Shown here piece after piece: positions 7,112-63,458 of a stretch of 64,000 nucleotides of DNA; the first letter of the stretch is position 1; each line of letters starts with the position of its first letter. The notes under the pieces were generated by a model. That model saw only the letters and a list, made by a program, of their open reading frames with translations, was not told where the DNA came from and did not search any database. The position numbers and the translations under genes are program-made. Where the stretch lies: positions 20,026,001-20,090,000 of the forward strand of contig NC_135251.1 in the NCBI RefSeq assembly GCF_964204865.1. The letters are read 5' to 3'. The stretch comes from Styela clava (taxonomy: Eukaryota).

Positions 7112-7633
7112 TTAAACTAGCTCTTCTAAACAGAGGAAGCGAACGTTGAAATCACCGCACTTTTCGCCATTCCGTTGGTCGCTGTTGTAACACGCTAAAC
7201 CTTTTTCCGCGTCGAACGTTCGGAAGATTTGTCCTGTTGTGTATGCAGCGCTGCAAAAAGAGAGAAAATTTGACTGAACGATGTTTAGTAGCATAAAACG
7301 AGAGAGTGAAATTAGAAATAGGGCTAATGAGAGACATCAACTTAATACGAGAGAATATACGAGAGTTAAATGAGAGAGAAAATCATAACGAGAAATTTAC
7401 AGACAATAAATTCATATAAATTGGATAGATATAAAACCAAAGATTAAAAATAAATAACAAAGATTGTATAAAAAAAAATCAAAATATATACCTTCCGTTT
7501 CTAAGTCGCGCTTCAATAGACACGGGCCTGTCGCAAATTTTGTGGTCAAGCTTAAGTAATTCTAGTAATTCAAAATCCCCCCTATGGTCAGGGTCATCCC
7601 GATCAAACCACTCCGTCCAGACAGTTTTACAAG
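7112..7633 (-). CDS. C-terminal WxxW (mucin CysD/CILP-type) domain; exons 7633-7492 and 7250-7112 including the stop codon
   Basis: [19 protein letters not shown]...[11 protein letters not shown]...TGQ...GLACYNSDQ...[10 protein letters not shown]. Confidence 0.9.
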
Positions 7634-10600
7634 CTGAAAAGAATGAAATTTCAATTTTTAGATTTTAATATACTATTAATGATTTAATGGTTGAGAATGA
7701 AATATATAAATTGGATAATTTTCGTCGATCGTTAACAAAGAAAGAAACGCAATTGCTCTGTGCGAATACGAAAGAGAATTTTTAACGACGAACTCGTGTG
7801 TATTGGTAGCACGAGCTTCACTACAAGGTTACATGGCGAAAAAGAAAGATATTGCGGTGTTTATGCAGCAAGAGGCACAGATTAGCCGTTAAATCAGGAG
7901 TGACCAATCTGATTTTGACCGCGATCGACTAAAATCAAAATCGTCAAAATAGCTCGCGATCGACTATACAATATAAGCTCGGCTCTGTGGGCACATTCTC
8001 AATACAATTGCCACAAAAATTTGCATGTTTCATTTATTTAAAAAACAACTAAAATTAGTCTTCGATATATATACTTACTATAAGCAGGTGCTCCAGTTTC
8101 AACTCCCGTTTTCATAGCTTCCATATATGCATCTAATTTATCTATCCATACTTGCATAGTTTTTCCTTTCCATTCAGTAAAATTTTTCTTCGCTTTATCG
8201 CAGACTGGAGTTGTCCCTTTTAGAGAATAAACAATTACAATTCATTGTAAACAAACACAAAAAATATTCTTGTTTTTGTAAATTTGCACAGCATCTGCAT
8301 ATATAAAAATCCGACTTCAGAAAGAAGAATACAATGCCATATGCGCATTTTTCATATTTATGATTTCTTTAACATTCGACACCAATTAAAATATGAACTG
8401 TTTGATCATGTATTAAACCAGGGGTTTTGTTGTTGAAAAAATGTATCAGAAATGAGTAGTTTATTACCTTTGCAAGTCTTCATATCACTTGTTAAATTGT
8501 ATCCATCTCTACAACTACAAACAACTTGATTATCTACCCATGAACACATGTGATCACATCCGCCATTGTTGTATCGGCATTCATCTGAATAAAGAGACAC
8601 ATTATATTATACATGTGATTTTTTTTGTCCAATTGCACGCTAAGGGTACCAGATTGTTAGATCAAGTATAGCAATCTTGCCTTTTCAACAAATAAATGTA
8701 ACTATGTTCTAATATATTGTTGTAGAATATGAGCAACATCATGCCCGTCGAAATTTTCATTTAGTTTTATGGCCTAAATTAAAACGTGCCTTCTGTAATA
8801 ATCAGAACAAACTCTGACACAACAAATCCTGTACTTACTTTCCCAATGACAACCGTACGTATGATCTTTATGTCCACAGAATTGTCCTGGATAACATGTT
8901 GTTTTTTGACATGACAATTCACCATTATGACATTGACATTTCTTTTCACAATCTTCTAAGTACGAATCAAAGTTATTCTAAAAGGAATGAAATAAAATAT
9001 TTACAAATTGTTATAAAGCCAGCTTGAAGGAAATTTTTCGGTATTGGAAAATACATCACATACCGGATAATATTCTCCTTCGTTGCTTACACATCCGCAA
9101 TCGGTTGCATTCACACACCTTTCTCCGTCTAATACAAATCCATCATCACATTGACAACCTGTTTAAAAGTTGAATACCATGATTTACCATGAACACATGT
9201 AACTAAATCATGACAGAAAATCATTCTCATTTAAACAGATACAACATAGTTAAGTATCTTGATCTCGCAAACACATTTGTAAAAAAGACAAACAATTTGT
9301 TGAAATACCTAGTTTTGTAAATTTATTGTAGATTGATGCATATGTTGCAAATTTTCTGTGTTTCTATTTGCTATATTATTTTACTGTCCTAAATATAATC
9401 ATACAATATGGATATATAGCGAAATATTATTTATTTGTATATATCACTATAGGGTTAGAGTAAGGGTAGGCCATTACAAATTATCAATTTATTTTCAATC
9501 AAGTTTTCGTTAATGATCTGTATCCGACTCCTTTCAGTTCGGAGGTCTGGCTTACCTGGTACGCATTCATCGCCCATAAAAGTGTTTGCTTTGCATTTAG
9601 TTGCATCCTGATCAGAGCACGTGAGTTGACATTCTGTCATGCAGGACTCAAAATGGCTGTTTGTTGGACAATGCATGATTACAACTGAAATAAACAAAAA
9701 CATCGTTAAATTTAATACTCTACGATTGAAACTATTAGTAATTGCAAATGATCATATACAACATATGTTAAAATCGGTCATTTTCCAGAGATGACATCTT
9801 AAATTTTGTTTTACATACAATTCAAATCTTCGTCAATTGTGGCTACATTGAATCAATCTGCAGCATGTGTAGTATGGTGTCCCCAATTTAATATAGACTA
9901 TTCTAATGCTGTTACCTGGTAACTCCGGTTGTGGAGGAAGCGCGTTTTTCACGTGGTCAGCTCTTGGTTCTTCTTTACAAATTCCGTAGAAATTATGAAT
10001 ATTATTATCAGTAGACTCTCTGTCACCCTGAGAGGCACACATCTCATACAAGCAATATTTGTACAAGTCACATCTGGGCGTTGAGGTGTAATTTCCATTG
10101 TATTTTTCGGAACAATAATCTTTGTATTGAGACAGTTCTAGCTCAGTAGTGCAGACTTGTGGAACCGATATTTGTTTTCGGCAACTGGAATTAAAAATCA
10201 TTTTAATGGAGAGAAGAATTTATGAATTCCAACCGGTGGGTCACCTAACCAACTTCAAAAAATGTAGCTGAGCCACTTAAAAGTAAAGAATGCGGCTATC
10301 GCTCAGCCTTGCAGTAATGAAGACACCGAGCGAAACGACAAAAGATTTACCGCAACGAAAAAACAACAAACATTATGTATTTATACCCGAGTGATAGACT
10401 TTTTAAACATAAACTGTTGGTTCAGGACTTTAATACATGATGGGGAGTGTTAACAAGGGCCACACCAAATGGCGTGGCGGGCCGGATTGTGGACCGCCTA
10501 TTGCACACCCCTCTAGAGAGTACGTAACTTTTGTTCAAAGAGTCCTAGATTATTGAACAATCATACACATACAGGTATTCATGTGCTGGAGTGTTTAATG

Positions 10601-13600
10601 GGACTTTTGGGTACAATCATACACAAACATGAGTTCATTTGTTCAAGTGTTTAATGAAACTTTTGGATATAATCATACACAAACAAAAGTTTAAGTGTTT
10701 AATAAATTTTCTTCACTTTCGGGTTCATTTAAGTTCCTTTTGATGGGGTCGCCCTTTATTTACTGAGCTGATCAAAGAAATATTAATAAAAGAATGATAA
10801 AAATGGTTATATGGTAAAATATTTGCATGGAATCTGATTATGCTTCAACGAATGCGTGAAGCAAACCTCTACTTCAGATATAACTCTACTCACCCCGCAT
10901 CTGAACCTGCATCTCTCCAACTGTTAACAAAAGTTGGTACATCAGTTTCAATAACTCCCGTCGATGTTCTGAAATCGTTTGCCTCATTTTCATCAAAATC
11001 TCCACAGAGTCCTTCCATTTGATTTGACATCGGTTGGCGAGCTTCGATTCGAAGACTGTTGAAATATAAGTATTGATAAAAAGTCTTTCAAAATCAAATA
11101 AAATGACCTCATTAGCCGTTTCAACCTCGAACTTGAATCCTACTCAAATTTGCAAGCAATCATCCATCACCACATTAACGTTTTGTGATATTATAAAATA
11201 TCTTTTATTAAGTTGCAAGATTTACCTTTGTTTGCCATCCCATCTTATGACCAATCCAAATTGAAATACGGCGACAATAAATCTTCCAAATTTTCTTATA
11301 GAAACTTCATCTAGTGTTGAGCCAATTGCAACATTTCTACCATTTACCTAAAAATAAATATATTACAAGCATTTTGTGATTTTTTGTAAGTAACAAACCT
11401 GAGTTGCCTGGTTATGTCAAATAGAATGAAATGGAAATTAGAACCGGCTTTCTATTAGATTATTCATTCAATTTCATGAAGGAAAGAATTTTAGAGGAAT
11501 TGAAAATAGGTCAAAACCAGCTTACCATTACGGTCTTATCTTGTGCCATTATCATATCCATTTTATTTGTTGTAATAAAAACTTGAGCTACTCTTGATAA
11601 GTTGGAATTCGAGTTAGAAGACTCAAGATCGACTTTCACGGCGAAAGGCGATATTGTGGAATCCTTTCGAGATTTTATCGCAGTAAATATACATGTTGCC
11701 GTTGTGTTGAATCTCATCCCATCGAATGTGGAAAACATACCATTACCAAAAGCTTGACAATAGGCTCGAATCTGTACATACGATAATACGAATGTTCAAT
11801 ATATATGCTAAAAACAGTTGTTTTTCAATATCTTTGCGATTAACATTGGCGATTATATCAAATATTCCATCTCTACTGGTAGATTATTCAAGATTTGACA
11901 GACATTGGAAATGTGATTTTTGACTGGGAGTAAAACTACAAATCTACTTTCTGTTTAAAAAAATGTACAGCTAATGGTTGTAGAAACATATTCACATAGC
12001 ACCACACAAACGACTCATAGATATATTATTTACCCTTGATCGAACAGTGCATTGTTGGAATCCGTCATCGTCTTTAGCGCATTTTGCTCTTGTAATACAT
12101 GGTTCCGCCTTTTCGCAAGTATTCATATCGTTGCCAAGACATGTACATTTATCTTGGCATTGATTAGCTCGATATGAAAAACCTGATGATAAAATAATAA
12201 GTAATAAGGTATCTGATAATTCAGCTTTCTGTATAAAAGTTTACAAAACGCAAGGACGTCAATCAACAAAAAGTTGTGGAAGATTTCTGATAAAAGAAGA
12301 AACCACCGATATGCTATATTTAAATTATTCATACAACAAAGATGTCAGTACACACAAGCTTATATCAGACTTGAAACAATTCAAGAAATAGATTGGCACA
12401 GTGAAATTTTACAGACGAAAATAACAAAGATCATTCATCTTAGAAATTTTGATACCAAAGGGCAATGAAAACAAAATCATAATATATTAGTTCGTCTAAA
12501 CAAATTTTGAGGGAATGAGAACACAAAGTAGAGACGAAAAGGTCATGAATATATTAGATACAAAATATGGTTTAATTAAAGCTGGTGCAACTTGACTTGC
12601 AAAACGAAAAGGAACTGATACTTGATTCTTCAGCTTCTATTTTCAATAGAACAAACTGTATGAATACTGGAATACTGTATAAATATCATGTCCAGCTGCC
12701 ATGCGCTGTCTATAAGAGTTTTATACCTGTGGGAACGAGTTTCCTGTTAACAACACAGCCACCACATGTTGACTTAGGCAAGCAATGTCCATTCGATCTC
12801 ATATATCCTTCATCACAAACGCAGTCTTCAACTTGTTGATGTCTGCATCTGTAATAAACATTTTTTATTCAATCGTTGCTCCCTGCAATAACGTTGAGGA
12901 GTTATGTATTTATGTGAAAGCATTACTTGAAGTTGAACACTTGGCTCCAATCGAACAAATGTCATATACTGCAACTAACTAAATTTTCAGATTTTAAAAT
13001 TTGATCTAAACTTAGCAGCAAATAAATTGAAAACCCTTACTCTTTCTCTGAAGCCGTGCCGCAAGTTTCTTCGCATGCTTTTGTGCATCCCGAATAGTGA
13101 CTGTTAACTGGACAAGCGATTTGCAATTGATAATTCTTTCTCCAATTACACACAGGTGTATCTATGGCCATACACTCGTGAGCGTAGGCTTTGAGAGCCT
13201 ATGTAATATATAATGTAAATTAGTAAAAGACAGTAGATCGATAACAGAAATGTACAGAAATACGTTAAAAAAATTATTCTTTATAATTACGAATATACTG
13301 TTGCTAAAAAAAATAAGTAGCAAATCAAATAAAATTAAATCAATAAATGACAAAATTAATTATAATTTTATCCAATCTTGACGTTGGCCTTACAATTTTA
13401 GTAAAACCAACTGTTTTATTCTATAAATATAAATAAAAATCACTTCAGCCAATACGTCTTTGTCTCCACCAGACCTGCATACATCATGAACGCATGCTTC
13501 GAAAAACTCATTTGCTTTTAGCTTCGAACTACAATTCTCGAATTCGGAGTTGGGATCCATAATAGCTCCACAGTGGTCCGATGCTCCGCTGGAAAAAAAA

Positions 13601-16600
13601 TATTAAAATAAAATAAAAATGATACATTGTCATTGCTATATTCATCACCACTCGCGAAACACATGATTTTTTCAAACAAAAGTCAGGGTGCCTCTTGTGT
13701 ATGAATAACATACCTCAGTAGGATATTTTGAATTTAGTACAAGTCTTTCAACAACCAAGATATATATATTTTCAATGGAAAATGCATTAAGACGATAATC
13801 ATATGATATACGAAGATGTCGATCGCTGGATAACGGCTTCGACCAGCATGAATGATTATAAAATTAATTATTCAGGTAAATAATTGCTTTTTATGTGGAA
13901 GGTTTTGTTAAGCTTCATTTCCTATGCTTACAATTTCTTTTCGTTTTCAACAGAGCAATCTAGTGGAGGTAATGAGACGGGTGGTCTGCATGTTTGTCCT
14001 CTTTGATCGAGAGCAAACGCGGCGACGTCATTGTTCAAAGTACCGTCGTCTAAGTTCAAGTCATCAATCGGATCTCCATTGAAATTACCACACAATCCTC
14101 TGACCTAAATGTAATCATGTTTTTATTGATGCAACATGACATGATGTATGTAAACTTGTCTTCAAATTAACATTAACGAAAAATTAAAAATTCTTTTTTC
14201 TTAAATTTAGATAGATGCTATAAATATGATAAATTTTTGTTTTCGCAATAGTGGTCCTCGTAACTAACACTATCATTTCCACGTGATATATTGATATTTG
14301 GATAAATATAGCATGTTATTCATTTTATATCTGGCAAAATAAGCAATATAGGACACTAGAAATGCCATATACAACGTTTGAATGTTTGCCGGTTGTAACT
14401 TTGCGTTTAGTATTTACTTTCAGTCTAGAATAGATATTTTTCAAATTGTGTCGAACGGTACTTTATTTCATTACTTTCAATTTGGGTCAATAAGTATTGT
14501 TATTGAGTTTATATCTATAAGATCTTCTTTTAGAATTGGACCTTGTGCGATTGTTTTTTTTGCATTCAAATAAATAATTCAATCAAACATTCTCTGGTGT
14601 GTCAAGAATACTTCTCTCTATCACAACCCAGATAAAAAGAACATAAACAAATCTTACTTTTCCTCCAAACCTCGATGGCAAGGTTACTCTCAAATTACTC
14701 CCATCAAAAGCTATTTCCAATCCAAAGAAAGTTTTCAAGACTGTAAACGTTCCTCTGCGATCCACAGTTATCATGCGATCCTCATCAGCGCTTCTCCAAT
14801 TGTAGACACTTCTTCCATCAACCTTTAACGTGTGTTTGAATATTGATAGATTAGAAAGGATTTTATCTAATTTTGTTGCTATTGTTAGGACTATCATGGG
14901 CATTGTAAAATTAGATATTTTTCAATGTCTAGTAATGTTGCGTATGTAAAAAATAATAAAGAAAATAACACAATTAAAATATTTGATTAAGCAAAATGAA
15001 TAATAAGCAGAAAAGCAAAGTAAACAAAAAGAGAGTAAATTATTGCGACATGTATGATAAAAGATTGAAAGTGTAACATCATCCTGTATGAGTATTTGAA
15101 TGGCCAGAGTTTGATGCTGATTTTCAATTCGACAAGCGGATAATGTATTTTTTTCTTCAAAATTTGAATTATATCAAAGAATCGTGTTTGTGTTTAAAGT
15201 GGGCGCGATGCCAAACGAGCTTTACTTGATTAAAATATCCAATTCTCAATGTAAGTTTCACCACTTGAAGAGATGAAAATGAGTGAAAAGTTAAATGACT
15301 GGATATTTCATGGAAATGAATTTTCGCCAATTTTTTTGCCAAATGTCGAAGAAGCGCAAGTCGAAAATGCTAGCACAATAATCATTTTTTTGAAAAATTA
15401 AGCAACACTGATTCCATGCTACATTTACCATGCATGTAAGATATAATTTCATTGCTGTGCCGATTGATAAAGCTTGTAATTCAAATCAAAATGAAACGTG
15501 CTCTAAGCAATTTGATAGCGCAAAAGGATAAATTAAAATGCATGGATGATTCGTGCTTTGCGTTTGTCTACCTTTGGTTTACGGCGAAGTCCTGCGAGTC
15601 GCAGAACAAAAGTTCATGTGAACTAGGCTTTCGACTTGGAAATGATGAAAATATGGAACAAAAAAGCATTAAACGTATTATACCCGTGCCTGTGCCTGTG
15701 TTTTTAGAAGCATTGATTTTCCAAGTCCTGGAAGTCGTAGACGAATATTCTTCAGTACAGTGAGTTTATCATTGTCAGATGACGGTTGGATGTTAGCCGT
15801 CAAAACGAATGATTCCAATCTACTACGGGGATTTCCACGTTCGAATTCTCTCTTCGCAATGACGTAATGACATTGAGTATTGAGGTCATAATTATTTCCG
15901 TCAAAGGTAGAAAAGTGAGTGCTTCCCCAAGCATGGCATGTAGATGTTTCTAAAAATTATTATACATCACATATCAGATTGAAATTGTATATTATAATGA
16001 CATTTTCCATCTGGTCCAAGTTTAATTTTTGTTTTAAAATTCCTAATAAAATAACCCTAAAAAGGATCAGGACGTTAAGTGGAAAGAAAGACGTTTTCAC
16101 AGATAAACGTCATTTGCAATAAAGTTTCATGTCATAATAATAAAGTAAGAACGTCAAAAATATAGTTAAAATGTCGCAATGTCATATTAAGTATTTTATT
16201 TACTTGAAATTGCAAATGCATTCACAACATTCCACTAATTTTTATCCGATTCATATGATAACCTGTTGGAAGCCTCGCTTCGTGATATTGAAGACTTCCC
16301 TATATTGCAGAGATTATCCGAAACTTACCGATTCGAATACAGTCCAATTTTCCAATTCCATTGATAGCGCATTCCTCTTCTCTACCGCATTTTGCAGCAT
16401 TGCATGTAACTATTCCAGCATTACATTCACACAGCGTCTTACACTCTTTAGTGTAAAATATGTCTCCGCTCTAAAAATAGTACAAAGAGGTCATATTAAA
16501 ATAGATTCATTATTAATACTCTATTTGAGCACAAAAAAGATAAAAATACATGGGTAAGGTATATTTTTCATATTTGTTTTCATGCCTTTTTCGCTTTAAA

Positions 16601-19600
16601 GAAGGTCCCATGCCAGAAATCGCTTGAATGAAAGAGACCACATGAGCTGACTGAATGTCGAATCTTTAATTTCAGCTTACCCAACTTCCCTAGTTGATAA
16701 ATTATAACTACCTTGTAATATCGCCCATCCTTAACACATCCACATTGGCTCACTGGAACGTATTCATCTCCAGAAAGAACAAATCCATCATCAGGGTGAC
16801 AACCTAAAAATGTTCAAAATAGTTACTGGCGATATACGAAATATCAATGAACAAAAAACAATTCATAGCAAAAATAATATCTAAAATATTTAATATGGTA
16901 TGTTTAGATCCATAAATACAATGATGCAATGATTCTATTTCATATACTATTCTATAACTCACCTTCAACGCAGTTATTTCCAATATCACTCAGTCTACAT
17001 TGTGAACCATCAAGATCATCACACGCAGGCTGGCATTGCATCATACAAGGTTCAAAGTGGCTGTTAGTCGGACAAGGCACATCAGCTAAATACAATTTTG
17101 TTTTGTTTATTACAAGCAATTATGAAAAATGTAAGTATGTATGAGAGTAATATATAAGAGAGGCGCTGATCAAATTCTAAGTTTAGCCGAATTCGAGAGA
17201 ATATTGTGAAAAACAAAGAAGTTTCAGAAAGTAATTCGAGAGAATGATGCAAAATAAATAACATATAGTCATACATTATTTTGAAAGAAGGGATTTACTG
17301 AATTGTGAACTAAACTAATAAGATTAATTATTATTCAGAAAGAAATATCCTCTCACTCAGGTTAGCTTCTTCTCTCCAATTCTTATCTAAATCTCCTCCT
17401 TCTTGTCTACAATCCTCAGTGTAGTCTGAAATCACTCTTTCTCGCATTTTTTCGTCACCTACGAAAGCGCACATGTCCAGCATGCAGTTAGCGTACACAG
17501 ATTCTGCATCAGCTAAACGTTTACAATTCTTCAGTGGACCATCAGGATTTATTAGCACGGAACAAGCTTGTTCAGCTTGGATCATCTCTTCCACTCCGCA
17601 CTCAAATACTGGACGTTCAACGAGAAAATCGGCCTGAGGGCTGGGACATCTAAAATAAGATTGAGGTTAGATAATATTATTGTTTGAACGCGGGCATGTG
17701 AATGAATACCGAAATTGTTATACCAGAACTTAAGTAAGTACTTTGTAATAAAATGCGTTTTACCACTAATTATTTATACACCTTAAACAGTTTTTAATTG
17801 TTTTCAACCTCAATACTACTTAAGACTGTTGCTAACTGAATAGCGACGAACTGTTGGGTTGCATATACATGGGTATCAATTATACTCACTCATCGTTATA
17901 ACCCTCTACTCTCCACGAATTAACAAACTCTTCTGGTTCTTCGAATACTTCTTCAGTAAAGCCATTTGTCAAATCGTCTGAAGGGTCGTCGTTGAAATTA
18001 CCACAAACACCTTCCACTTGTCCTCTCAAATTTCCCATTGCCGAGATTCTCAATCTGTAAAAAGGTTCATAATTCTAAATTTTGTAAAAGATGAATTGAT
18101 AAAGGATAGTTACTCAAAACAAATTTGGATTCCTCTAAATGGATTATTATACCACATTTTTAAGTTTCTCACCTGTCTGATCCATCCCATCTGACGTTAA
18201 GACCAAAGTCAAAATTGGCTGACATGTATCTTCCTATTTTCATAAGTTTCATTCCTGATTCAGATGTTCCAGTCTGTACGACTTCGCCATTGAGCTATGC
18301 AAACAAACAGTGAAGTTTAGTTTGTTGGGAGATAAACGAGAATAACTAATATACATAAACAGAATTTTATATGGTCTGATTTTATTAAATATTCCACCCC
18401 AGGATTGTATTTCTGAGATTTGTTCTTTTGTTTTTCCCTAACAAGAATCTGTACAATTAAACTATCTGGCGCAATCTAATGGATTTAAATGAGTGAAATT
18501 CGAAATACCTAAACTCTCACAACATAAATTAAAATGGTTGTGTTTGGGCCTTGATAAGGATCGAACCCGAATTCATTAGCTTGCGGAGTCAATATAGTTA
18601 GACTATTGTTCCTACCACAATGAGATATCAATATTGGGAATAGATTTTTCAATTCCCACTATCCTCTTGCATACCTCAACGACTGGGCCTTTAAACATTG
18701 ACAATCTTTGTCCACGATAATCTATATGAATTTCTTTCACGTTGGACACAGTAATGTTAGGCAAAGGTTGTTCGTTCACGGCAACAACGGTGAATGGGTC
18801 AATTGCAGAACTGACCTTTGACCTGTGATTGACAATACGATTAATTAATTTCAACAATAGTATTTAAATTGATTCACTACATCTTTAAATAAAATAGAAT
18901 TGTCACCTACCTGACCATTGTATAGGAGCAGATACCCTGTGAATCAAATTTCTTTCCATCGAACGATGTGTAATGAGGATCCGTTATAGCTTTGCAAGTA
19001 GCACGACGCTGAAACCAAAACATACTATTTCACAAAAACACCGTCAAAATGTTAGAAATTCATGATCAAGTAAAAATTGAAATGTAGTCTAAATAATCAA
19101 ATTTATACTGTTTCCAAACAATAAAATCCAAATTCTGTATAAATTATTTATATTCAGAAATATTATAAAAAAAAAAAAAGTTTTTTCAAGAATATAAATG
19201 TATAAAATATATATATGAGTTTAAATATGAATTACAACATTAATATTCCGCTTTTAAGTTCAACTTTTGCTTACTCTAGTGCCTGGCATGCATTGAAAAT
19301 ATCCTCCTGCAGCTCGGTTACAGCGTTCTGACAATAGACATCCATCGTCGACGTCCTTGCATTCAAAAATATTTTGACCCACACATTTACATTCTCTTGT
19401 GCAATCCTCATTTTCTTTGTAACTGAAGCCTTGGAAATGATAAAAACTTTTTAGTATTTGTTATCTAGTATTTGTTAATTGAAAAATAATTAGTTTTATC
19501 GGTGATATACACTAAGTACTGAGCTATATATCAAAATTTAGAAATGAGACTAGTACCTCTCGCGTAATAAACTCCATCAACCAGGCATCCACATTTTTCT

Positions 19601-43600: not shown

Positions 43601-46600
43601 AGTTGTTATTAGACGCTTCAAGTTTCACATTTAATTCGCATGATACATAAATACACATATTTGACAGCCATCGTCGACTCCACTACCCTTTCAATAGTCC
43701 CGTCAGTCCGATCACTCTGGATAGAACTATTGCAGAGATGGCGAACCATTGTCCCACCATACTATGGTCCGCCAATATACAAGGTAATGCAAAAAACATT
43801 CCAACATTTTAGTTATAGAAATTGATAGTAAAACCACTTGGAATGCGGTTTGAAAAACAAAATTTTATAGACTTGAATGAACGACTACAAAAATCTGAAA
43901 AGTCAATCCAAAAAGTACATTTTCTTCAAGGTGGAATAATTTTCCTACAAACTCTTTTGACGCCATGATTTGAGGTAGCAATATAAAGGCTTTTTAGTAA
44001 TACATTTACATTTTCATTTCAGTTATTTTTCATTTATTTCCGATTGATTATTTATCTATGACCCACTGTCTTCCTTTATGACAACAAAAAGGTAACTCTT
44101 GACCTATCCAATAGGACAGGTTTGCCATCCTTGCCATTGTTCAGCGACACAAACCCATATAAACAATACTCGGAGATTCATTAATTGACTCACACAGAAA
44201 ATACGCATGTAATTTCTGACAGTTCATAATTCACGGTTCCGGTACCCTGGTACTCATTTATTATGGGAATAACCCTATATTAAATTTGCCGGTGCAGATA
44301 TTATATACTACTTTGAAGTTACTTATATGACAGGTAATTTAATGTAAAGTGGGTTAGGTTAGAATAGGAGACCACTTAGTTCTGGTGGTTTTGTAAAATG
44401 TATTCTGAGAAGTAGAGATTTCACCAAAAGAATATCTTTATTTAATCAGACAAATAATAATATGCTACAAATTTATCTCCCCTGAATTTATTAGTGAATT
44501 GATGAGTGATCAACTGTAAAGGTATATGTAATTATTATCATATAAGTTCGTATAAAGTTGAGCACACATATAATTATCACGTTTGTTCTATCACGAAATA
44601 AAGTAAATTGAAATACCATTGCGGATAACGTGTGGTGTGGGAAATGCTAAGACTCAATTAAATTTTACCGAAAGCGCAATATGAAAAAGAATCGGGTACA
44701 TTGCTTCTGTAAATAATTACATTAAAAAAGTTGCCCGGCTAGTTATGATGCCGTATGGTTTGATAGAACGTGAGGACAGAACGAGATAAAGTATTCAAGT
44801 ATAAAATCACTGTTTTTTTTTTCAGTAAACTACCAAAAATGTTCAAAATTGCACTAAACGATCCTACACAGCAATAATTTTAGGTTGAAACGGTTTGTAT
44901 AGTAAAAGGAATCACATATCTGTATTTAACCTAACCACAAAGTTGATGTCTATTAGTTTTTACATTATAAATTAGTTGCGTTTATAAAATTCCGTGAACT
45001 ACGTAAATGAAATTATTGATCGATTAATACAGCATACCTGCTAGTCGCGTCACACGGTGTGCTCGTTACTGTGAAAGTGAAATTGCGACCTGGTCTGACC
45101 TTTACTGGAATCTCTGGTGGAATTGATGTTTCAATCATTGGTTTTGCAAAACACAATTTTGGTGGATCTTTGACTGGAAATTTGAAAAGTATTGTCAGAT
45201 ACGGGTTGAAATTTCCACAACGTATAATACAAAAAATTATGACTTTATTCCATTAAATTATTAGAATGCTTTGAAAGTTACGATACAGTATTCAATTAGC
45301 AATGGAAAAAGCTGAATTGAATCTTTCTGCTCTATTTCCAGGGTAGCATAGATCCATAGAACATAACCTGGTGAGGCTTTCCATCGACTGTCAGTCTGTA
45401 ATTATATCCAAACGCTTTATTTATTAGCTGAGCTTATTGCAATGAAAACACAATTGCAGGTACTGTACAGTGCAAATTGGGCAACGATGTGATACACGCT
45501 TTACCCGGAATACGCAATACCCGCCGGGAACGTATTTTAATGCACTATAGAAATCGAAGATAATTTAATTAATAAAGCAGTGAAGGTTAAAAGATATCAC
45601 CTATTCCAGAATAAGCAAAATGACAAATTTGCCAAGCACGCAAGTTTCTGTCGAGCATGTAATATAAATGCTTTAAAGGCTTATTGCAAATGACGTTATT
45701 TACTTAGTTGTGTATGAGTTGAAAATATGAAGTAATACGATATTGGCCAGCAGCAAGTCGTGCTAGCAGGTCGGGCATTAACATACACAGCAGTGGATAA
45801 TTTCCGCGACAATAATTAATGAAAATATGGTAAGAAAATAATCTGAGTAAATGATAATCCGACATATTTTATATAATGTTTGATTGATATGACGCAAATA
45901 TGACAATGGGTCGCCAAATATTGGTATGTCATTAACGAAAATTATGTTCGCGTTTCCTTTTGAATTGTGAAACTGTTGTCAATTAGTTAATTAATGGTCC
46001 GAAAATTCATGGCTTCACCATATTATCTACAAAAATTACGAACAAATGATACTTTTCCTAGACAGTTAACTAATTTATTCTCAATTCCTCTTTATTTTAA
46101 ATTGTATGGTCAAACTCTCCAGTTTATCAACCGATATACGACAAGTATATATAATAGTATATGAGTAATCGTTTTAGAATTTACACAAAAATTTTGCCTA
46201 TTGACTGTTTATTTTAGTATCGTAAAAGCAAGCACAAATACAACATAAACGAGGTTGTAATGACATGTGGCGTTACTGCCTTGTGTTCGTTCTCAAATCA
46301 CAAACTTATCTCAACGTCAAAAACATGTTTGTCTCCAAGTTGTACGAAAAAAGAGGTTAAAACAGATTTCATTACATACTATTTTATCTTTTGTATACTC
46401 GTAGTTTTAAGTACCTGAGGCGTCTAATTGGGATTGAATAAGTTCACCAGCATGATGACATCATTTACCTATTCAAACCTCATCAGTCTATATTACAATA
46501 AGAAGCATATATTTATCAAAAACTTACGGACAACTATAAACTGTACTGGGACTGTACTAAGAGCGTCTGACATCATAAAATTTTTCTTTCCCATTGTAAT

Positions 46601-49600
46601 TCCATCATTCGATCTGTGATGATCTTCTACCATGATAGCAACAGGAATTTTACCCGTTGTATTTGACGCAGGTGTATAACGGATCAAGCAGTTTTCCTGG
46701 TAAAAAATATGGAGACTTCAAATAAATGTAAATCTTTAAAATGGGAATTTAGGATTTCATTGAATAAATATAGTTTAATTTTTGGGCCGTTCAAAAATGC
46801 ATACACCTCGTTTTTCGCATTTTCGAAATAACAAAATAAATAAATACGAAATATGAAATTAAATCAAAATGAATTAATGTGTGTACTATGTTTTGAATGA
46901 ATATCCGCCGGAATAACAAATGAACATCGTTGTGGAAGTTTTGGAATGTGCTTGTATTATTGATCGAGTGTATTAGTCCCATAGTAAGAGAGTCGATATA
47001 GCAAGATGTGATACAAACCTCGTCTAAAGTAAATTCAGAAAACAGAGAGCAAATTGTTCCACATTCTCCTACATGTCTTCCCAGTCGACACGTGACTTTG
47101 TCTCCGTCTGAGTCTCTGACAGCCAAATCGATGACATCTGGAACTCCCGCTCGTAATCTGCCAAAATATCATAGAAATACATTAAGCAAAATTATTTAAA
47201 TTCGTTACGAAACTTAGTAGTAAATGTACTGATTTAAATTATTGATTTAAACAAACTTATGCAGCTTGTTTATTAAATTCACATCACGAAATGATGGCGA
47301 TTTAAAAATGCATCGTATACAAACAATGGTAGCGACTAAACTAGCACACTCAATTGTCTTGCATCAATTTTGTCCCTATATCAGATAATTTAATGCTCGT
47401 ATGATAAGTGACATTAAGGAAAATAATGTTGATATAAAGAAAAAGTAAATATAGGAATGATTGTGATAATACAATCACATGATTTATAAAATTGACTAGC
47501 AACATCTCATTGCTACTATGGCCTCGTCAGTCGTGGATGATCACACAAAAAGTTCTGAATATTACGAAATAAAGTTTGGTGAAATTGTAGGCAAGTGTCT
47601 AGCAATGAGTCACTGAGGCATGTCTGCCCATGGTATCATTTCTATTTCAGGTAAGGTCAGGTTTCCAATGATATTATCTTGCTAAAAGTGAGTTTAAATT
47701 TTAAACCCAAAACTAATATTATAATACCGTTAGTATTATTTTCATCACCTCTTACCTAGAAGGTTAGATTGTACATAATAAATATCAAATAAATCCTACA
47801 TAATAGATTATAAATATCATCACTTGTTTAAAAGGTTTCCTGGCATTTTATAATAACCCATTGTAAAACGCGGATTTGTTTGTTGAGAAGGTTACATTTA
47901 TAACAATCGAATCAAAATATGACTGTTTTATCACGTTAGTCGAATTTGAAGGTTATCAAACCCTGCGACTCTCTTGCACAACAATATCCTGTTGTCAATA
48001 TCCAATCGTTGTCAGGCAATAAATTCAACTTAATGTCTTAAACCGGTATCATGACGTCATTGGTGCAATATTCAAATCGAACTAATCCGACATTGTAGTT
48101 TAATTAATGATATGGTGATACGATGATATGACCAACGAAGCTAAGCTGCAGCATTGTGTACGCCAATCTACAGACGCACCTTTACAAAATAATTTCAAAA
48201 TCTCCGACTTATGTGCAACGGAAGCTTGCTTTTTGAAAAATTTTCAGACAGTATTAATGGTAAGGTTATCCATTTCTTGGAGATCACCTGCGTGAACCAA
48301 ATACTGGAAGTATAAAACCGAATGACGCACGTTATTCGCATTTCCTCAAACCACGTACAATAGCATTTATTGAGTATCTCACTTCCGGTTAGATGCAATT
48401 GATTTGAAGTTCGTCCAACAAATCAATCACCCTGTCTGCTATGACGTCATTGATGTCGCCAGAGTGACATTATGGCAGTTTGATTAACTTTCTATCCATA
48501 AAAGTGCGTCATGACTACATGCAAATCTTTACTTCCGTTTCATCGCCGAGACCTCGAAAAACGCAAATTAGCGAAATAAGTAAAGTAGCCAAAACAATCT
48601 ACATGATTTCGTAAGCCATCGTCAATAAAACACGACGGAAACTCAAGATTATTGGAAGTTTCCTCTAGACGTGACAAAATGCCGACATGCTCATGTCAGC
48701 ATGATGGATGTAATATGTTCAAACATGCATTGAATTTGCTTTCGTTCGCGGAATTCACATCGCAAGCACATTTTTGTGGCGAGTTTCCGACCAAGTATCT
48801 GTGGAAGAAATCGAGAGCCATTTGGGTTAGAAAATTGAATTTATAACTTTTACTTATTTATTGCAAGAAACATTTCCATAATCTCAAAATATTGTAATTT
48901 TACCTTAATTGCTAGTGGCCATACAGCAATACAACAAACTTTCCCTTTTGTTAACATAGGTGGCAAAATATTTACGTGCGTCATTAACTAACGATTTGAC
49001 TTCATTTTGAGAATGTTTATTCACATTTCTATAACGTTGTAGTTTCGCCAGTAAACAAGCAAATTTATGCTAATGTGGATGCGAGTGGAGGACGCTTGTT
49101 GCTTTTATGCTAATCCGTAACAGATAAATTCACAATTGGTAAATGGTAATTTTGTTGAAACTAATGTAATATGCCTCATATCAGTTTTGCATTTATCTGC
49201 TATCTAAAAGTTCTTTGAGACCCCACGTCAAAAACTTAGAATAAAATAGGCAGATATAAAATATATTAAATGGCGACTTAATTTGACAAATCTAGAGAGT
49301 ACTTGAACAAAAAACCAATATTTCGTTTTTTACTCTTTAACTTGTTCTTGTCGTTACTTTTAACGGATTGAACTAATTTGATCACTTTTGATTTCTCATC
49401 ATATTCTAAGTTTTGAATAACTACGCCATTAGATAATAAATTTCGGGAACATTAATTATTGCACTAAATACTTTAATTTACACGCAACTTTTTGAGAAAT
49501 TGAGTCTAAAACTTGTTTTTACGTTATCATGCTAGAGTGACTAGACGTTATCTTACGTTATCATTGGAGCCATTGCTGTGACTGGTGAAGAGTTGGGTCC

Positions 49601-52600
49601 CCCAGTATCAGACCGGATTCCTAAATTTAATGTGGTGGTAAGAGCCCATTCTCCTCCGGCACCGACCACTAAATCTGTTAGCCAACAGCATTCCATATAT
49701 GATATTTCAATTGGACCATCGTCTTCGAAAACCTTTTTAAAAGTATTACTTCCAAACATCCAATCTTCACCAAGATTAAATTCTGTACATTTTTCTCCTG
49801 CAAAAATAATATGCATTAATTAAATTTATATATTGCCAATATGTCTTCTTCAATCAAGATTTTTTTAATTGAATTGTGCAACTTCTTGCAGTCACCCTCA
49901 TCAATTATATCAATCTTATTTTTTATAATATTGAAGACTACAATTCATCAATTCTTTTTGAAAATTTGGTTTGCTTAATTGTGTTGTGCATCACAATTTT
50001 CCCCTTGAAATCGTATGCTGTCTTTTGCAGCGTCGTGATATTGCATTTGGGCAGCAAATTTTGATTTATACGGTTAATTTTTTTAATAATAAATACTATG
50101 AATAATCTGTCTGTGCTTCGAAGATTTGTTGTGCAAACTTGAAACCTCATTAAATTTATTCAATTGACAAAAAATTGGAAAAAAATACTTCATAATTAAT
50201 TGTTTTGAATGAAAAATTATATAATTTCACGCCAACATGCTGGTGGAGATGGACGATCAAACGCCATATTCTTAATAGATTTGGTAAATAATTTGATACC
50301 CAAAGACACACATAGTTCTCAGAAAGGCGATGTGATTTGGAAAAAGATTTGCAAAGTTTTATGATTTGGTGACAACATATCAGTATAAATTACATTTTAA
50401 GCGACGGTAAATTTATACAACGGAAATTTATTTGATGTTTCTAACCCATCATTTGTGCACCCATGCTATTTTATCAAATTATTTGATTAATGGTAAAAGT
50501 AAGATCCAATTTCCATTTTTTGTGAAATTATGTATTATATTAAAATTGTTTGCGGTGTCAAAATTGGCATAATGTTCTACATAACCTATTAAATACAGAT
50601 CCGATAACATTCCAGTCTAACTAAATTCATATCTTATTTAAACGATAATACAGCAATTGAAAAGAATGATGTGAATGTAAGAAGGAATCTTTTCAGTGTG
50701 ACAATATAAATAATCATATGACATACTCTAACATCGATGTGAACAATCATTCATTAAGTATGTGGCCGTGAATTCCTAACAACAATGCAGATTTTTATCA
50801 TCAATGTGAGATTGTTTTTGCCACAAGAATTGTATGTTTTTATTGTTGTCGAAAGCTGTCGGTTTACGGTCAAAATTATAATCGGCTTGAGGAGTCATTA
50901 ATACTCTTATAACGTGACGATAGGTTGAGTACTTTCCGATAATACTGCTAAAAATAAATTATATATGGACTAAAAATTTTAATTCATTTTTCTTCATTAA
51001 AAATTGTTTATTCCATATAATCAGCACAATACAGAATATCCCGGAATTTATTAAATTATCCATCCAATAACAATATTTATTAATTTTTAATAACTGTACT
51101 TTTGGGACATTTTCCATGACGTTGATAATAAAAAAGTTAAGTTTAACTTAAGTTGTCACTATAATTTAATCTCGACAATGCAAGATATTAATATATTGAC
51201 TGGTGTTGATGTAGATATTAACATTTAACTAGTTAATCTTTTGATCGTGTAGGCTATTTGAACTTTGATTGGCACATTTGCATAAAAGCTTTAAATACTG
51301 TTTAGCTATCAAATACGAATTACTTCTGATTCATACGTGGACGAATCTAATTATTTGCTTGAATTCAAATTTACTTAGTTCATAAATACTTAACTTTTTG
51401 TAAGACGAGCAATATGCACCAGGTACATTTTGACCTTCGTAATTCGCAGTTTAAAGTGAGTTGATACTTATATCTTATTACTAAATAGTATATAACGTTA
51501 ATGGGGTTCGTCAGACCGGTATATTAATTCATTTTTTTTCAAATCCAATGAATAATAGAAAATCCGACAATTATTTGATCATTTTCATGAACTTTTAAAT
51601 ATAAATTTTAGACGAACGGATTTTACAACATTGCTCATGTAAAGTAGGATATCTGAATCAATTGGGGTATTAAAAATAATATAAAATGGAGGGACATCTT
51701 CAAACAAAATGGTTGTTATCTGCAAGTTCATTACGCAATTGTCAAATAGAGATTGAGAGAAAAGGTTTATTCTTTGTAAGTGATAAAATCATGGTCAATA
51801 TTTTAATGAAAACAAGATAATCAGGATATGTTTGTTATGTATTTTGTACCAAATTCAAGATCAAATCCTATTGTTACATCACCTAATACAATAACCCGCC
51901 ATGGCCGTCTCTTTACGATGTCATAATCGAGCTTGTCACAAAGAAGGCAATATTCAAGGACAGTTTATTGCTGTTTATTTAGTTATAGGCTCCAATGTTG
52001 CTATAAATATCCAAACAACTGACTCACATAAATAGGTTGCATGAGATGGCTAGAAGTTGAATCCTATTTCAATAAGATGAGTAGTTTCTTATCGACATGA
52101 AGTTTGAACAAATCAAGCCTTTTAAGGAGATATGTTGATATGAAAACACTTACGGGTCGAAGCAACGACTCCTGAACATCCAAACATACAGAACCATCGC
52201 GCGTCTTCACCGACCAATGTTCCAGAAGTAATCGTTCGTTCATCACATCCAATTCTGGACAGTCGCCACCCCAATTTGAAAGTAAATATCACCTAAAACA
52301 AGAAATATATGATCAATCAATACATTTAGCTATATAAATTGAAAACCATTTGTATAATCGTTTATTGTTGTCAAATATAAGCAGGAAATAAAATGGGACA
52401 ATGGTGTTTTTCTAGTTTTTGGTTTAGTTCATATCAGTCGATATAATGAGCGGGTGCCATTCACTGCGTTGTCTTGCGGTAATCGAGATGCTATCATGAG
52501 GCTTGGTTGGGCTAAGTCACCGACGCCTGTCACCGACTGACGAAAAACGATTTTGTTCACTTCAAATATTTTATTTAAAAATCATTGTAATTTATCACGT

Positions 52601-55600: not shown

Positions 55601-56355
55601 GTGTTGGTATTGGTGAAACACGCAAAAATGGAACAAACACTTTTGTTTTACCAAAATGCAAGTATTTTTCATCACTTTTCATTGTAAGCTATCAGAAACG
55701 CTTACTGACATCGAACGTGTATTACTTTGCAAATCTAATATTCAATATATCATATTGATTTTGAATTAACAAATGTAAAATAAATAAACGTGACGGCATA
55801 ATTTCTGTTCCCTATTAAACGTGCACGACTTTAATACATACTCTGGTCTAGGCGAAATCATTAACAATTTGAGTTCAATATTTTTATGTAGTAGAAGCTA
55901 CCATAACATTTAATTTTAACGTTCTCCTGGACTGAAATATCCTTACCAACGCATCCTTTTCAAGTTGAGCGATAGTTGGTTTATCGCTGGTACAAAAAGT
56001 CAAGTTATCGTTAAAATAAACACTTGATTTGCGGAATTGTTGATGATTTGTTATATCAACAACTCATTCATTTGTAATTTGCCTGGTGATATTTTAGGAA
56101 AAGTATGATAGGCGGCACTTTTACGCGCCAAAAGCTTTATAAAAAACTTTGCCGTGTGCCAATTTGGATCGTATTATAGAAACTCACCTCTCTATATGAT
56201 AATGAAAAACTATCGCTTGGTTTCCACGATATCGATCCTCCACGAAAATGAGTTGCTTGAACATTGCCGGCCCCTTCGCCAATTCCAGCGACGATAATAT
56301 AAATAACGATACCGACCACGACCGGTCCCATAACAGTGGTTTTACCGTACGACAT
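7112..56355 (-). CDS. Giant secreted VWD-C8-TIL repeat protein (FCGBP/zonadhesin/alpha-tectorin-like superfamily) with atypical N- and C-termini; ~83 coding exons, roughly 4,000 aa
   Basis: Exon chain traced from ATG at 56355 to TAA at 7112 with GT-AG introns and compatible phases; no in-frame stop found in the exons I translated. Nine repeats of C-x-x-x-x-(DP)H-(Y/F)-x-TFDG...GLCG(D/N)F(N/D)...CxxDxC...TIL. Confidence 0.9.
8468..8584 (-). CDS. EGF-like domain exon (phase 1-1) of the giant gene
   Basis: [38 protein letters not shown], a six-Cys NGGC..CSC..GY.L..D.KTC pattern. Confidence 0.9.
8839..11771 (-). CDS. VWD-C8-TIL-TILa assembly 9 (7 exons)
   Basis: [18 protein letters not shown]...[14 protein letters not shown]...YCLYEMC...[10 protein letters not shown]. 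Confidence 0.88.
10233..10512. mobile_element. Possible decayed hAT-type MITE
   Basis: GC-rich end GGCGGGCCGGATTGTGGACCGCCTATTGCACACCCCT followed by a CTCTAGAG-like site resembles hAT/Charlie termini; the partner terminus is poorly preserved. Confidence 0.3.
10558..10705. repeat. Degenerate ~56-bp tandem repeat, about 2.5 copies, intronic
   Basis: AATCATACACA...AGTGTTTAAT recurs three times. Confidence 0.7.
12034..15949 (-). CDS. VWD-C8-TIL-TILa assembly 8 (7 exons)
   Basis: [15 protein letters not shown]...[15 protein letters not shown]...[10 protein letters not shown]...[14 protein letters not shown]...[10 protein letters not shown]. Confidence 0.88.
16329..19008 (-). CDS. VWD-C8-TIL-TILa assembly 7 (8 exons)
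   Basis: [18 protein letters not shown]...[14 protein letters not shown]...ANCMLDMC...NWREEANL. Confidence 0.9.
18545..18616 (-). repeat. Possible decayed tRNA-derived SINE head
   Basis: B-box GGTTCGATCC on the minus strand (18558-18567) at tRNA-like spacing; no intact cloverleaf. Confidence 0.3.
19275..21947 (-). CDS. VWD-C8-TIL-TILa assembly 6 (8 exons)
   Basis: [18 protein letters not shown]...[14 protein letters not shown]...[22 protein letters not shown]. Confidence 0.9.
19924..19953. repeat. (TA)n microsatellite
   Basis: Run of TA dinucleotides ending in TACATACAT. Confidence 0.85.
22019..25156 (-). CDS. VWD-C8-TIL-TILa assembly 5 (8 exons)
   Basis: [18 protein letters not shown]...[14 protein letters not shown]...[22 protein letters not shown]. 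Confidence 0.9.
23795..24134. repeat. 168-bp direct tandem duplication overlapping an exon 3' end and its splice donor
   Basis: Two near-identical copies starting AAATCTGGCATAACATTGGA at 23795 and 23963; AAAT microhomology at the junctions. Confidence 0.9.
25256..28319 (-). CDS. VWD-C8-TIL-TILa assembly 4 (8 exons), closest paralogue of assembly 3
   Basis: [18 protein letters not shown]...[14 protein letters not shown]...[12 protein letters not shown]. Confidence 0.9.
29555..32884 (-). CDS. VWD-C8-TIL-TILa assembly 3 (8 exons)
   Basis: [18 protein letters not shown]...[14 protein letters not shown]...[12 protein letters not shown]. Confidence 0.9.
33017..36260 (-). CDS. VWD-C8-TIL-TILa assembly 2 (8 exons)
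   Basis: [18 protein letters not shown]...[14 protein letters not shown]...[17 protein letters not shown]. Confidence 0.9.
36741..41879 (-). CDS. VWD-C8-TIL-TILa assembly 1 (9 exons)
   Basis: [14 protein letters not shown]...[10 protein letters not shown]...[23 protein letters not shown]...[10 protein letters not shown]...GCVCNKGY. Confidence 0.88.
39962..40303. mobile_element. Non-autonomous Tc1/mariner (pogo/Tigger-like) MITE, 342 bp, intronic
   Basis: Left end CAGGTAGTCCTCGACTTACGAC versus reverse complement of right end CAGGGAGTCCTCGGGTTACGAC (3 mismatches in 22). TA on both sides (39960-39961, 40304-40305). No ORF. Confidence 0.85.
42737..45173 (-). CDS. Exons 6-8 of the giant gene (45173-45038, 43349-43197, 42780-42737): Ig/cadherin-like beta-sandwich module
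   Basis: ...[13 protein letters not shown]...IAPIGVRKS...[39 protein letters not shown]; WTP motif and alternating beta-strand pattern; in frame with both flanking exons. Confidence 0.75.
46528..52292 (-). CDS. Exons 2-5 of the giant gene (52292-52154, 49797-49557, 47157-47019, 46696-46528): Sib/'integrin beta-like' bacterial-type N-terminal domain
   Basis: [11 protein letters not shown]; [36 protein letters not shown]; [18 protein letters not shown]; [19 protein letters not shown]. Phases 0-1-2-0-1 are consistent. The family assignment is from motif recall, not a search. Confidence 0.8.
56188..56355 (-). CDS. First coding exon of the giant gene: signal peptide and start of the mature N-terminal domain
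   Basis: [56 protein letters not shown] followed by a gtgagt donor; hydrophobic core and a VQA cleavage-like site. Confidence 0.85.
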
Positions 56356-59300: not shown

Positions 59301-59879
59301 GTGAAGATATATTTTAGATAAATTTACCTACGAACAGTGCTGGCAAAATGTCTTCCGTTGAATGTCAATTTTAACTTTATAGAATAACAATGCTTGATTT
59401 TAGCGTAGGTTGTGAAAAATGTTGATGGAAATACACAAATGGGGTATTTCGTTAACTTGGGTAGTTCGTATAGTCACCGCGTATAATCTTCCAGCTTGAT
59501 TCCGAAACTCCTTAAAATTACAAATGCCTTATGTAAATATTGCATATATATGTGACAATACTTTCACGAGACAAACAAGAAATGAAAGTACTTAGGAACA
59601 ACAACACGACGACTACATGGATTAAATATATTAACTTCGCATCAAAAATCACGCCCTCGTGGTGGATCATGTATGTTTCTGCTCCATCTGAGAAGAGAAT
59701 CCCTGCTTGCACATCTACGTAAAAGGGAAATGAGTAGCTGGGAAATATCGCGTTAAGCTAGCAACGAGTTAGTAGGCTCTTATTTTATATTAAAAGAAAC
59801 ATGAACATAATGACGTCGGTACAAAAATGTATAAGAAATATTGTCGCGTATCACAGATTTAGATCAAACGCCTTAATTC

Positions 59880-60820: not shown

Positions 60821-61012
60821 CGAATTCTTATTTGCAGCTCTGGGTACATGATTCCACATATGTCAGATAAGGCGTTTTTTACTTTGCTAATCAGTGTGTT
60901 TGTGTTTTTAAATCTACATGTATAGAAGGAACATGAGAATCGCCGACATAGCTGACTAATAGGATCTAACAGAAATGTTGAAAAGATAGAATGACCATAG
61001 ATCTTAGTCATT

Positions 61013-63270: not shown

Positions 63271-63458
63271 TCTCTACTAGCAGACTAAACTAACTTATGT
63301 CTATATATTGTTATTTAAATTCCTCAGTCTATGAGTTAGGAGCGAGTCATGGCAGCATGGTCAAACCGGTTAAACTTAGTTTTCCATCTCTTTCATCTTT
63401 GTTCACAGTTGATTCAGTTATTGATTTTATTTGTTTTTATTCTCTTACAAAGCCAGTG

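Follow-up and report, generated by a model that had tools for sequence, protein, structure and literature searches.

The window analysed here is a 64 kb stretch of the ascidian Styela clava (contig NC_135251.1 of assembly GCF_964204865.1, positions 20,026,001 to 20,090,000), in which the G+C content runs from 29 to 37%, in a host genome of 377 Mb. It holds, on the minus strand of chromosome 2, a gene of about 49 kb in which 83 exons, with every intron GT-AG, form one continuous chain. This chain is one S. clava gene for a secreted, cysteine-rich glycoprotein without a membrane anchor. Its coding sequence of 12,402 nucleotides (nt), with a single stop at the end, yields a model of 4,133 amino acids (aa) with 274 cysteines, arranged as a signal peptide, a head of roughly 370 aa that a family profile places with the Sib proteins of Dictyostelium, nine von Willebrand factor D units of the form VWD-C8-TIL-TILa (D assemblies), an EGF domain, a predicted helix and a WxxW domain. 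The head and the VWD array are carried on one mRNA, as is shown by transcript contigs of two studies in which exons 4 to 10 are spliced together at the predicted sites. The gene is a resolved and transcript-supported example of heads and tails being swapped on a stalk of D assemblies.

Gene Structure and Transcript Support

The minus-strand stop-free segments of the window include repeated cysteine-rich exons, and an all-against-all comparison of these gave nine VWD starts (n = 9, the upper coordinates of units 1 to 9 in Table 1) and a repeat of eight exons. To solve the splicing, donor and acceptor sites were scored, and use was made of compatibility in frame and of the phases that units 2-7 conserve (0-2, 2-0, 0-2, 2-2, 2-1, 1-1, 1-1, 1-0). 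An earlier reading of this DNA (the original prediction) had named two junctions as decisive for a single transcript, 42737/41879 and 8839/8584, and both were recovered by this independent solution. The start ATG lies at 56355 with an in-frame stop upstream of it, the stop codon occupies 7112-7114, and a polyadenylation signal follows 18 nt past the stop codon. The median intron measures 264 nt; the longest introns, of up to 3,895 nt, are found among the eight head exons, and those of the tail are short (254, 251, 445, and 241 nt). Splice scores are weak at unit 8 junctions K1 and K4. Pfam matched none of the ten longest flanking or antisense open reading frames tested (flanks 1-7100 and 56400-64000), and the window thus shows no sign of a second gene.

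Sequencing runs X1-X5 were aligned to window positions 41300-47200 only. About a quarter of the words in a stretch rich in exons are present in these runs, in keeping with RNA. A contig of 11,384 nt from X1 and a contig of 5,436 nt from X5, the latter belonging to a different study, carry the junctions between exons 10 and 9, 9 and 8, 8 and 7, 7 and 6, 6 and 5, and 5 and 4 at the predicted sites, and three of these same six joints recur in short X4 contigs. The joints in the transcript contigs are all GT..AG on the minus strand, and such intron-less GT-AG joints mean that the contigs derive from spliced RNA. Loose ends of the contigs continue into exon 11 on one side and exon 3 on the other. 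Judged by its length, the X5 contig starts approximately 70 nt upstream of the ATG, while the X1 contig would begin within exon 1 and end near exon 76 (unit 9) if it is collinear with the model. The expectation that one transcript runs from the head into the VWD array was therefore borne out at 42737/41879, which spliced contigs of both studies cross.

Domain Composition

Pfam was run exon by exon. VWD matches extend to both ends of the profile, C8 scores above the cut-off in seven of the nine units, TIL is found as two complementary halves and TILa is above the cut-off. The first C8 exon of unit 1 reaches 17.4 of the 23.7 bits needed, and the exon of unit 9 at the C8 position has no Pfam match and no relative elsewhere in the genome. 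Together with the splice solution, these per-exon matches support the nine VWD units and the EGF and WxxW domains of the original prediction. The model divides into a head (aa 1-396, 14 Cys), nine units of 387-402 aa with 26-28 Cys each, and a tail (aa 3956-4133, 12 Cys). As these parts account for every residue, no space remains for a ZP, NIDO, MAM or cystine-knot (CTCK) domain. The signal peptide (~aa 7-26) is the only strongly hydrophobic 19-aa window of the model, and the combined content of proline, threonine and serine peaks at 32% per 100 aa, so that no tract rich in these residues (PTS tract) is present. The original prediction that the protein lacks a transmembrane (TM) segment, PTS tract, ZP, NIDO, MAM and cystine knot accordingly holds across the 4,133-aa model, by residue assignment, hydrophobicity and P+T+S counts alike. 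The model also contains no glycosylphosphatidylinositol (GPI) signal and no CGLC motif, with one CGGC only. Helix exon 81 has no Pfam match and no relative in the genome. Its phase is 1-1, such that skipping it would keep the frame, and its single Cys brings the tail to an even number of cysteines.

The Sib-Type Head

The head contains the motifs HFRGG (aa 35-39), CCW (139-141), NSSP (170-173) and DSDGD (198-202), in agreement with the original prediction. A head profile made from exon 3 and three paralogous exons of the same genome was searched against 1.84 billion proteins (E <= 0.001) and found 283, in which the match lies close to the N-terminus. Window exons 1-5 and 7 align in order to these proteins with 30-60% identity, and a hidden Markov model (HMM) of the family hits exactly exons 1, 2, 3, 4, 5, and 7 among the 83, in collinear order and with E down to 1e-30. 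Two of the homologs are above the Pfam cut-off for SIBA-E_N (PF24907), and 13 of the 40 aligned family members match it at E <= 0.01. Through this family profile the head is placed, indirectly, in SIBA-E_N, the Dictyostelium Sib type. PF24907 itself found nothing in single head exons or in the whole genome; exon-wise Pfam is silent on the head because introns split the SIBA-E_N domain over three exons.

An AlphaFold2 (AF2) model of a 431-aa homolog (pLDDT 87.7) consists of three beta-sandwich domains, of which the third has a plain Ig fold with Z about 9. The Sib-type head and the Ig-like module of the original prediction are thus both upheld, the former by the family profile and the latter by the homolog model. 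Fold searches of the head model returned only generic likeness to multi-Ig, cadherin and adhesin ectodomains, with the first domain matched to no known fold, and an ESM Atlas search with exon 3 gave no usable match.

The label "bacterial" that the original prediction also gave to the head is not supported. The named relatives among the best matches are all animal (lamprey, amphioxus, bivalves, Lingula, corals, sea anemone, fish, frog and S. clava), and the pattern GIR[SN]DTGx[PV]N turned up no relative in 185,579 bacterial and archaeal genomes. One candidate bacterial relative, P0128, has bacterial-looking Pfam matches but carries a whole animal-type head; it is probably eukaryotic and was rejected. 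In other proteins the head is combined with Sushi/HRM, ZP, EGF and further domains, and in two cases with D assemblies. The Sib-type head occurs twice in XP_052795625.1 (3259 aa, from another species), as near-identical copies at aa 1-200 and 1650-1820 among 38 Sushi repeats; the annotation pipeline has probably merged two tandem genes into this entry.

The D-Assembly Array

Units 2-7 (window 18973-36236) carry TDPHY at the position where FCGBP has GDPH, its Asp-Pro self-cleavage motif, whereas Asp-Pro is missing at that position from units 1, 8, and 9 (GGSHF, GSTHF and GNGMF, respectively). GDPH itself is found in 0 of the 9 units. The Asp and His of GDPH are required for cleavage (PMC10880436), and both are kept in the TDPH of units 2-7, for which self-cleavage is possible judging by these residues. 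The array is a natural test case for TDPH as a substitute for GDPH in the self-cleavage of VWD units.

Units 3 and 4 are 76% identical, identities among units 2-7 are 37-47%, and units 1, 8, and 9 share 24-35% with all others. At E < 1e-6, nothing outside the window is related to the C8 exons of units 2-7. Because these exons are without outside relatives and units 3 and 4 are so alike, units 2-7 are best read from their sequences as products of tandem duplication inside the gene. Among solved structures, the nearest to the C8 exon of unit 2 is FCGBP (7.9e-52, summed over five repeats). Multi-VWD genes are numerous in tunicates, with 17 each in Ciona and Oikopleura, where their role is unknown (PMC4948705).

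Relatives Within Styela clava

A tandem pair of related genes, here A and B, is located on the plus strand of chromosome 2 at 12179209-12217643 (loci L016, L006, L009, and L011). Gene A has at least three VWD units followed by an EGF exon (12195522) and the two WxxW halves (12196795 and 12197162). Gene B, directly downstream, has a Sib-type head (~12199000-12205481) and then two VWD-C8-TIL-TILa units. The WxxW exon at 12196795 is the best paralog of exon 82 (49% identical), and the EGF exon of gene A, at 12.195 Mb, is paralogous to exon 80 and in the same position. In contrast to the present gene, neither A nor B joins the head and the tail, and neither contains anything corresponding to the helix exon or units 2-7. 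Genes A and B are old paralogs of the present gene because their identities to it are only 30-68% per exon. By sequence, then, the present gene has a B-type head and an A-type tail, yet is no recent recombinant, and heads and tails look modular among the VWD genes of S. clava. The term chimera, as far as it implied a unique fusion, is overstated: the combination of head and D units is also present in a lamprey and an amphioxus protein and in a second gene of S. clava, and an EGF-WxxW tail follows a VWD array in a third.

The same head has also been detected at two more S. clava loci, contig C8 19209000-19228999 (L007, L010) and 11472000-11491999 (L005, L008). The former corresponds to RefSeq LOC120328850, which combines the head with ZP-C, and neighboring models are named "oncoprotein-induced transcript 3 protein-like."

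Possible Function and Alternative Explanations

By analogy, this protein is probably a long, disulfide-stabilized rod or cross-linker of an extracellular gel, in an ascidian most likely the mucus of the pharynx or gut or some other secreted matrix. The original prediction had proposed a part in the feeding net, tunic or egg coat should the host be a tunicate, as it is. Attachment to a partner or a surface would fall to the head, like other adhesion heads of this family, which are found N-terminally in ZP, Sushi and EGF proteins. Non-covalent association is known for the CysD/WxxW domains of MUC2, and the helix and WxxW tail of the S. clava protein may serve self-association or attachment to mucin-type networks. 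The D assemblies would provide length and stability, possibly with Asp-Pro self-cleavage held by disulfides as in FCGBP, which is secreted and cleaved at its GDPH sites with the pieces held together by disulfides (PMC8267560). FCGBP also dimerizes via its C-terminus (PMC11796319). End-to-end polymerization in the manner of mucins and VWF would not be expected of the S. clava protein because CGLCG motifs and a cystine knot are lacking.

Several points weigh against this account of the gene and its product. RNA confirms only six junctions, the head-to-VWD1 junction included; the four between exons 79 and 83 in the tail, and most of those in the body, are based on splice signals, phase and paralogy. 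Runs X1-X5 were labeled RNA by guess, and assembly errors are possible in contigs that cross units 3 and 4, which are nearly identical. Helix exon 81 may be alternatively spliced. The Gly-Asp bond of cleaved FCGBP has been modeled in cis (PMC10880436), and given this bond TDPH may not cleave. Finally, the function is argued by analogy only.

The main rival would move the protein out of mucus altogether, making it a tunicate offshoot, without ZP, of an ancient chordate family of Sib head, D assembly and ZP, and a tectorin-like structural fiber of an apical matrix such as a sensory cupula, egg coat or tunic lining. Lamprey XP_061434353 has the same head after the signal peptide, then three units and ZP, amphioxus CAH1266756 has head, NIDO, VWD, C8 and ZP, exon 3 is 45 and 41% identical to the respective proteins, and S. 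clava itself has head-plus-ZP genes, e.g., LOC120328850. However, the model is without ZP, NIDO, TM segment and GPI signal, its nine units are closest to one another with units 2-7 apparently born inside the gene, and the EGF-WxxW tail, which follows another VWD array in this species, is a mucin feature in vertebrates (PMC4948705). We therefore regard an apical-matrix fiber as unlikely, though as the most serious competitor. It is still harder to accept that this is the S. clava ortholog of vertebrate FCGBP, the least probable of the explanations considered. Such an origin would account for the many VWD-C8-TIL-TILa units, the lack of PTS tract and cystine knot, the best solved match of the C8 exon being FCGBP, and the habit of annotation pipelines of naming such proteins "IgGFc-binding protein-like." Against it, the defining FCGBP_N/IgGFc_binding domain (PMC4948705) is absent and the head is of another family, no unit has GDPH, the C-terminus is EGF-helix-WxxW, and the combination of FCGBP_N with VWD repeats is confined to cephalochordates and vertebrates (PMC4948705).

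A different doubt concerns the extent of the protein. Were the EGF, helix and WxxW exons to form a small gene of their own, or to be an alternative 3′ end, unit 9 would be the last part of the main protein. The tail junctions 8839/8584, 8468/8216, 8079/7633, and 7492/7250 are predicted rather than taken from reads, the X1 contig, by its length, ends ~930 nt short of the stop codon, and the acceptor of the helix exon is weak. Yet the tail exons lie on the same strand with short introns, compatible phases and good donors, exon 80, whose start is in phase 1, has neither ATG nor signal peptide, and the intron after unit 9 has no polyadenylation signal, whereas one is present 18 nt past the final stop. 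The paralogous gene A has the same order of TIL/TILa, EGF and WxxW halves, and the Cys count of the tail is even (12) only with the helix exon. A detached tail is thus improbable, if not quite as much so as orthology with FCGBP.

The reading as a gel rod or cross-linker can also be extended. The protein could be an expanded tunicate member of an undescribed, chordate-wide family of Sib head and FCGBP-type D assemblies (amphioxus, tunicate and lamprey). It would then be a main structural fiber or cross-linker of the mucus net that derives from the endostyle and serves feeding, and TDPH would be a working cleavage variant. We offer this fuller version as speculation, with rather little confidence in all of its parts being right together. 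The make-up of ascidian feeding mucus and of other secreted matrices of tunicates is poorly known. The shared Sib-type head ties the tunicate protein to the lamprey and amphioxus proteins, and the mucin literature has not considered this head. Domain shuffling is to be expected in this superfamily, and tunicate multi-VWD expansions have already been documented (PMC4948705).

Features of the Gene

The exons and domains of the gene are collected in Table 1. Three tandem repeats were also detected in the window. A 168-bp unit at 23795-24134 (2.0 copies, 96% identical) falls in the intron between exons 45 and 46, and a 56-bp repeat at 10557-10685 (2.3 copies) in that between exons 75 and 76. Upstream of the gene, a 172-bp repeat was called by Tandem Repeats Finder with 2.6 copies and 93% identity over 60218-60664, with more copies spanning about 59952-60763.

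Table 1. Exons and domains of the S. clava gene (window coordinates; the exons of each unit are listed in the order of transcription).
Feature	Position	Strand	Exons	Basis and remarks
Exon 1: ATG, signal peptide (~aa 7-26), start of head with HFRGG	56188..56355	-		Head HMM positions 16-35
Exon 2: N-terminal domain of head	52154..52292	-		Head HMM 40-86, E 3e-8; paralogs in same genome
Exon 3: N-terminal domain of head, CCW and GIRSDTGxPNSSP motifs	49557..49797	-		Head HMM 90-166, E 1e-30
Exon 4: second head domain with DSDGD	47019..47157	-		Head HMM 169-213; junction to exon 5 in X1, X4, and X5 contigs
Exon 5: second head domain	46528..46696	-		Head HMM 214-262; both junctions in transcript contigs
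Exon 6: linker and start of third (Ig-like) head domain	45038..45173	-		Both junctions in transcript contigs; variable stretch, no profile match
Exon 7: Ig-like third head domain	43197..43349	-		Head HMM 309-359; weak Pfam Ig_SIBA-E_3rd, E 0.12; junctions in transcript contigs
Exon 8: 44-nt end of head, joined to VWD unit 1	42737..42780	-		43197/42780 and 42737/41879 in X1 and X5; X4 has the second only
Unit 1, aa 397-787, GGSHF, no Asp-Pro	36741..41879	-	9 exons: 41879-41737, 41470-41363, 41124-40959, 40740-40620, 39334-39178, 39098-38969, 38895-38782, 38697-38602, 36877-36741	Pfam VWD 1e-6, C8 partial and below cut-off, two TIL halves; first two exons joined in transcript contigs; 28 Cys
Unit 2, aa 788-1188, TDPHY	33017..36260	-	8 exons: 36260-36163, 35894-35741, 35377-35256, 34954-34787, 34486-34203, 33941-33816, 33602-33507, 33171-33017	Pfam VWD, C8 2e-14; phases as in units 3-7
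Unit 3, aa 1189-1589, TDPHY	29555..32884	-	8 exons: 32884-32787, 32687-32534, 32183-32062, 31906-31742, 31425-31130, 30793-30671, 30537-30442, 29703-29555	Pfam VWD 4e-8, C8 2e-8, two TIL halves, TILa 2e-7
Unit 4, aa 1590-1991, TDPHY	25256..28319	-	8 exons: 28319-28222, 27993-27840, 27238-27117, 26655-26491, 26314-26016, 25839-25717, 25606-25511, 25404-25256	Pfam C8 3e-9; assigned by paralogy with unit 3
Unit 5, aa 1992-2383, TDPHY	22019..25156	-	8 exons: 25156-25059, 24968-24818, 24698-24577, 24284-24120, 23606-23332, 23008-22886, 22733-22638, 22164-22019	Pfam VWD 3e-8, C8 6e-10; 26 Cys
Unit 6, aa 2384-2781, TDPHY	19275..21947	-	8 exons: 21947-21850, 21627-21477, 20946-20825, 20748-20584, 20308-20031, 19875-19747, 19652-19557, 19429-19275	Pfam C8 6e-15 and paralogy
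Unit 7, aa 2782-3175, TDPHY	16329..19008	-	8 exons: 19008-18911, 18822-18675, 18294-18173, 18054-17890, 17649-17357, 17085-16963, 16803-16712, 16470-16329	Pfam VWD 2e-5, C8 2e-12; 26 Cys
Unit 8, aa 3176-3568, GSTHF, no Asp-Pro	12034..15949	-	7 exons: 15949-15684, 14822-14658, 14104-13932, 13588-13444, 13198-13041, 12848-12727, 12182-12034	Pfam VWD 2e-9, C8 6e-9, first TIL half; divergent, 24-29% identity to others
Unit 9, aa 3569-3955, GNGMF, no Asp-Pro	8839..11771	-	7 exons: 11771-11526, 11347-11226, 11055-10894, 10184-9916, 9684-9556, 9158-9064, 8977-8839	Pfam VWD 2e-7, TIL 2e-4, TILa 3e-8
Exon 80: EGF, 6 Cys	8468..8584	-		Pfam FXa_inhibition 2e-11, cEGF 5e-6; junction 8839/8584 predicted from splice sites and phase
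Exon 81: 45-aa predicted long alpha-helix, phase 1-1	8079..8216	-		AF2 from single sequence: helix at residues 3-40, pLDDT 84; weak acceptor
Exon 82: first half of WxxW (CysD-type)	7492..7633	-		Pfam Mucin2_WxxW 2.5e-9, profile positions 1-42
Exon 83: second half of WxxW and stop codon	7112..7250	-		Pfam Mucin2_WxxW 4e-8, profile positions 50-88

Comparison With Known Proteins

No paper on this protein was found in the literature, and among the papers searched on the S. clava endostyle, none names a VWD marker. The nearest relatives are themselves uncharacterized and are indeed annotated as "IgGFc-binding protein-like" or "TECTA," as had been anticipated of automated pipelines. In lamprey, XP_061434353.1, an "IgGFc-binding protein-like" protein, and several paralogs have the head right after the signal peptide, three VWD-C8-TIL-TILa units and ZP; the head of XP_061434353 starts with ATHLRGGTISW, against a corresponding stretch of 11 residues in S. 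clava (letters not shown). A homolog search with the lamprey head, under a strict word filter, returned lamprey paralogs only. The amphioxus "TECTA" protein CAH1266756.1 has one VWD unit only, in an assembly of head, NIDO, VWD, C8, fn3, ZP, SEA and EGF. The S. clava protein shares with both the plan of a Sib-type head directly after the signal peptide and then D assemblies, but differs from them in its nine units, the lack of ZP and the EGF-helix-WxxW tail.

The original prediction that the architecture matches neither FCGBP, alpha-tectorin, zonadhesin nor VWF and the gel-forming mucins stands, as the defining features of each are missing. Like FCGBP, the S. clava protein is secreted, strings together many D assemblies and lacks both PTS tract and cystine knot, and six of its units have Asp-Pro-His at the cleavage position. 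However, FCGBP has an FCGBP_N (IgGFc_binding) head and GDPH in 11 of 13 units (PMC4948705; PMC10880436), whereas the S. clava protein has a head of SIBA-E_N type, TDPH and another C-terminus, and no head exon has a Pfam match to FCGBP_N/IgGFc_binding (PF17517) at E <= 1. SibA-E of Dictyostelium share the N-terminal SIBA-E_N family and the Ig-like domains that follow it, although the Sib proteins are type I membrane proteins with VWA, a single TM segment and a cytosolic, talin-binding NPxY tail (PMC9197732), all of which the S. clava protein lacks. Gel-forming mucins and VWF share the D assemblies, and WxxW/CysD domains are found in MUC2/MUC5-type mucins (PMC4948705), but the S. clava protein is without PTS, cystine knot, VWC and CGLCG, and its WxxW is single and C-terminal. 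Several VWD-C8-TIL units in a protein of extracellular matrix or adhesion are also seen in alpha-tectorin and zonadhesin, the former with NIDO, ZP and a GPI anchor and the latter with MAM, a mucin tract and a TM segment, none of which is present in the S. clava model. Overall, the domain order has not been described elsewhere, while all of its modules are known, and the S. clava protein is a variant of the FCGBP/tectorin kind rather than a new kind of protein.

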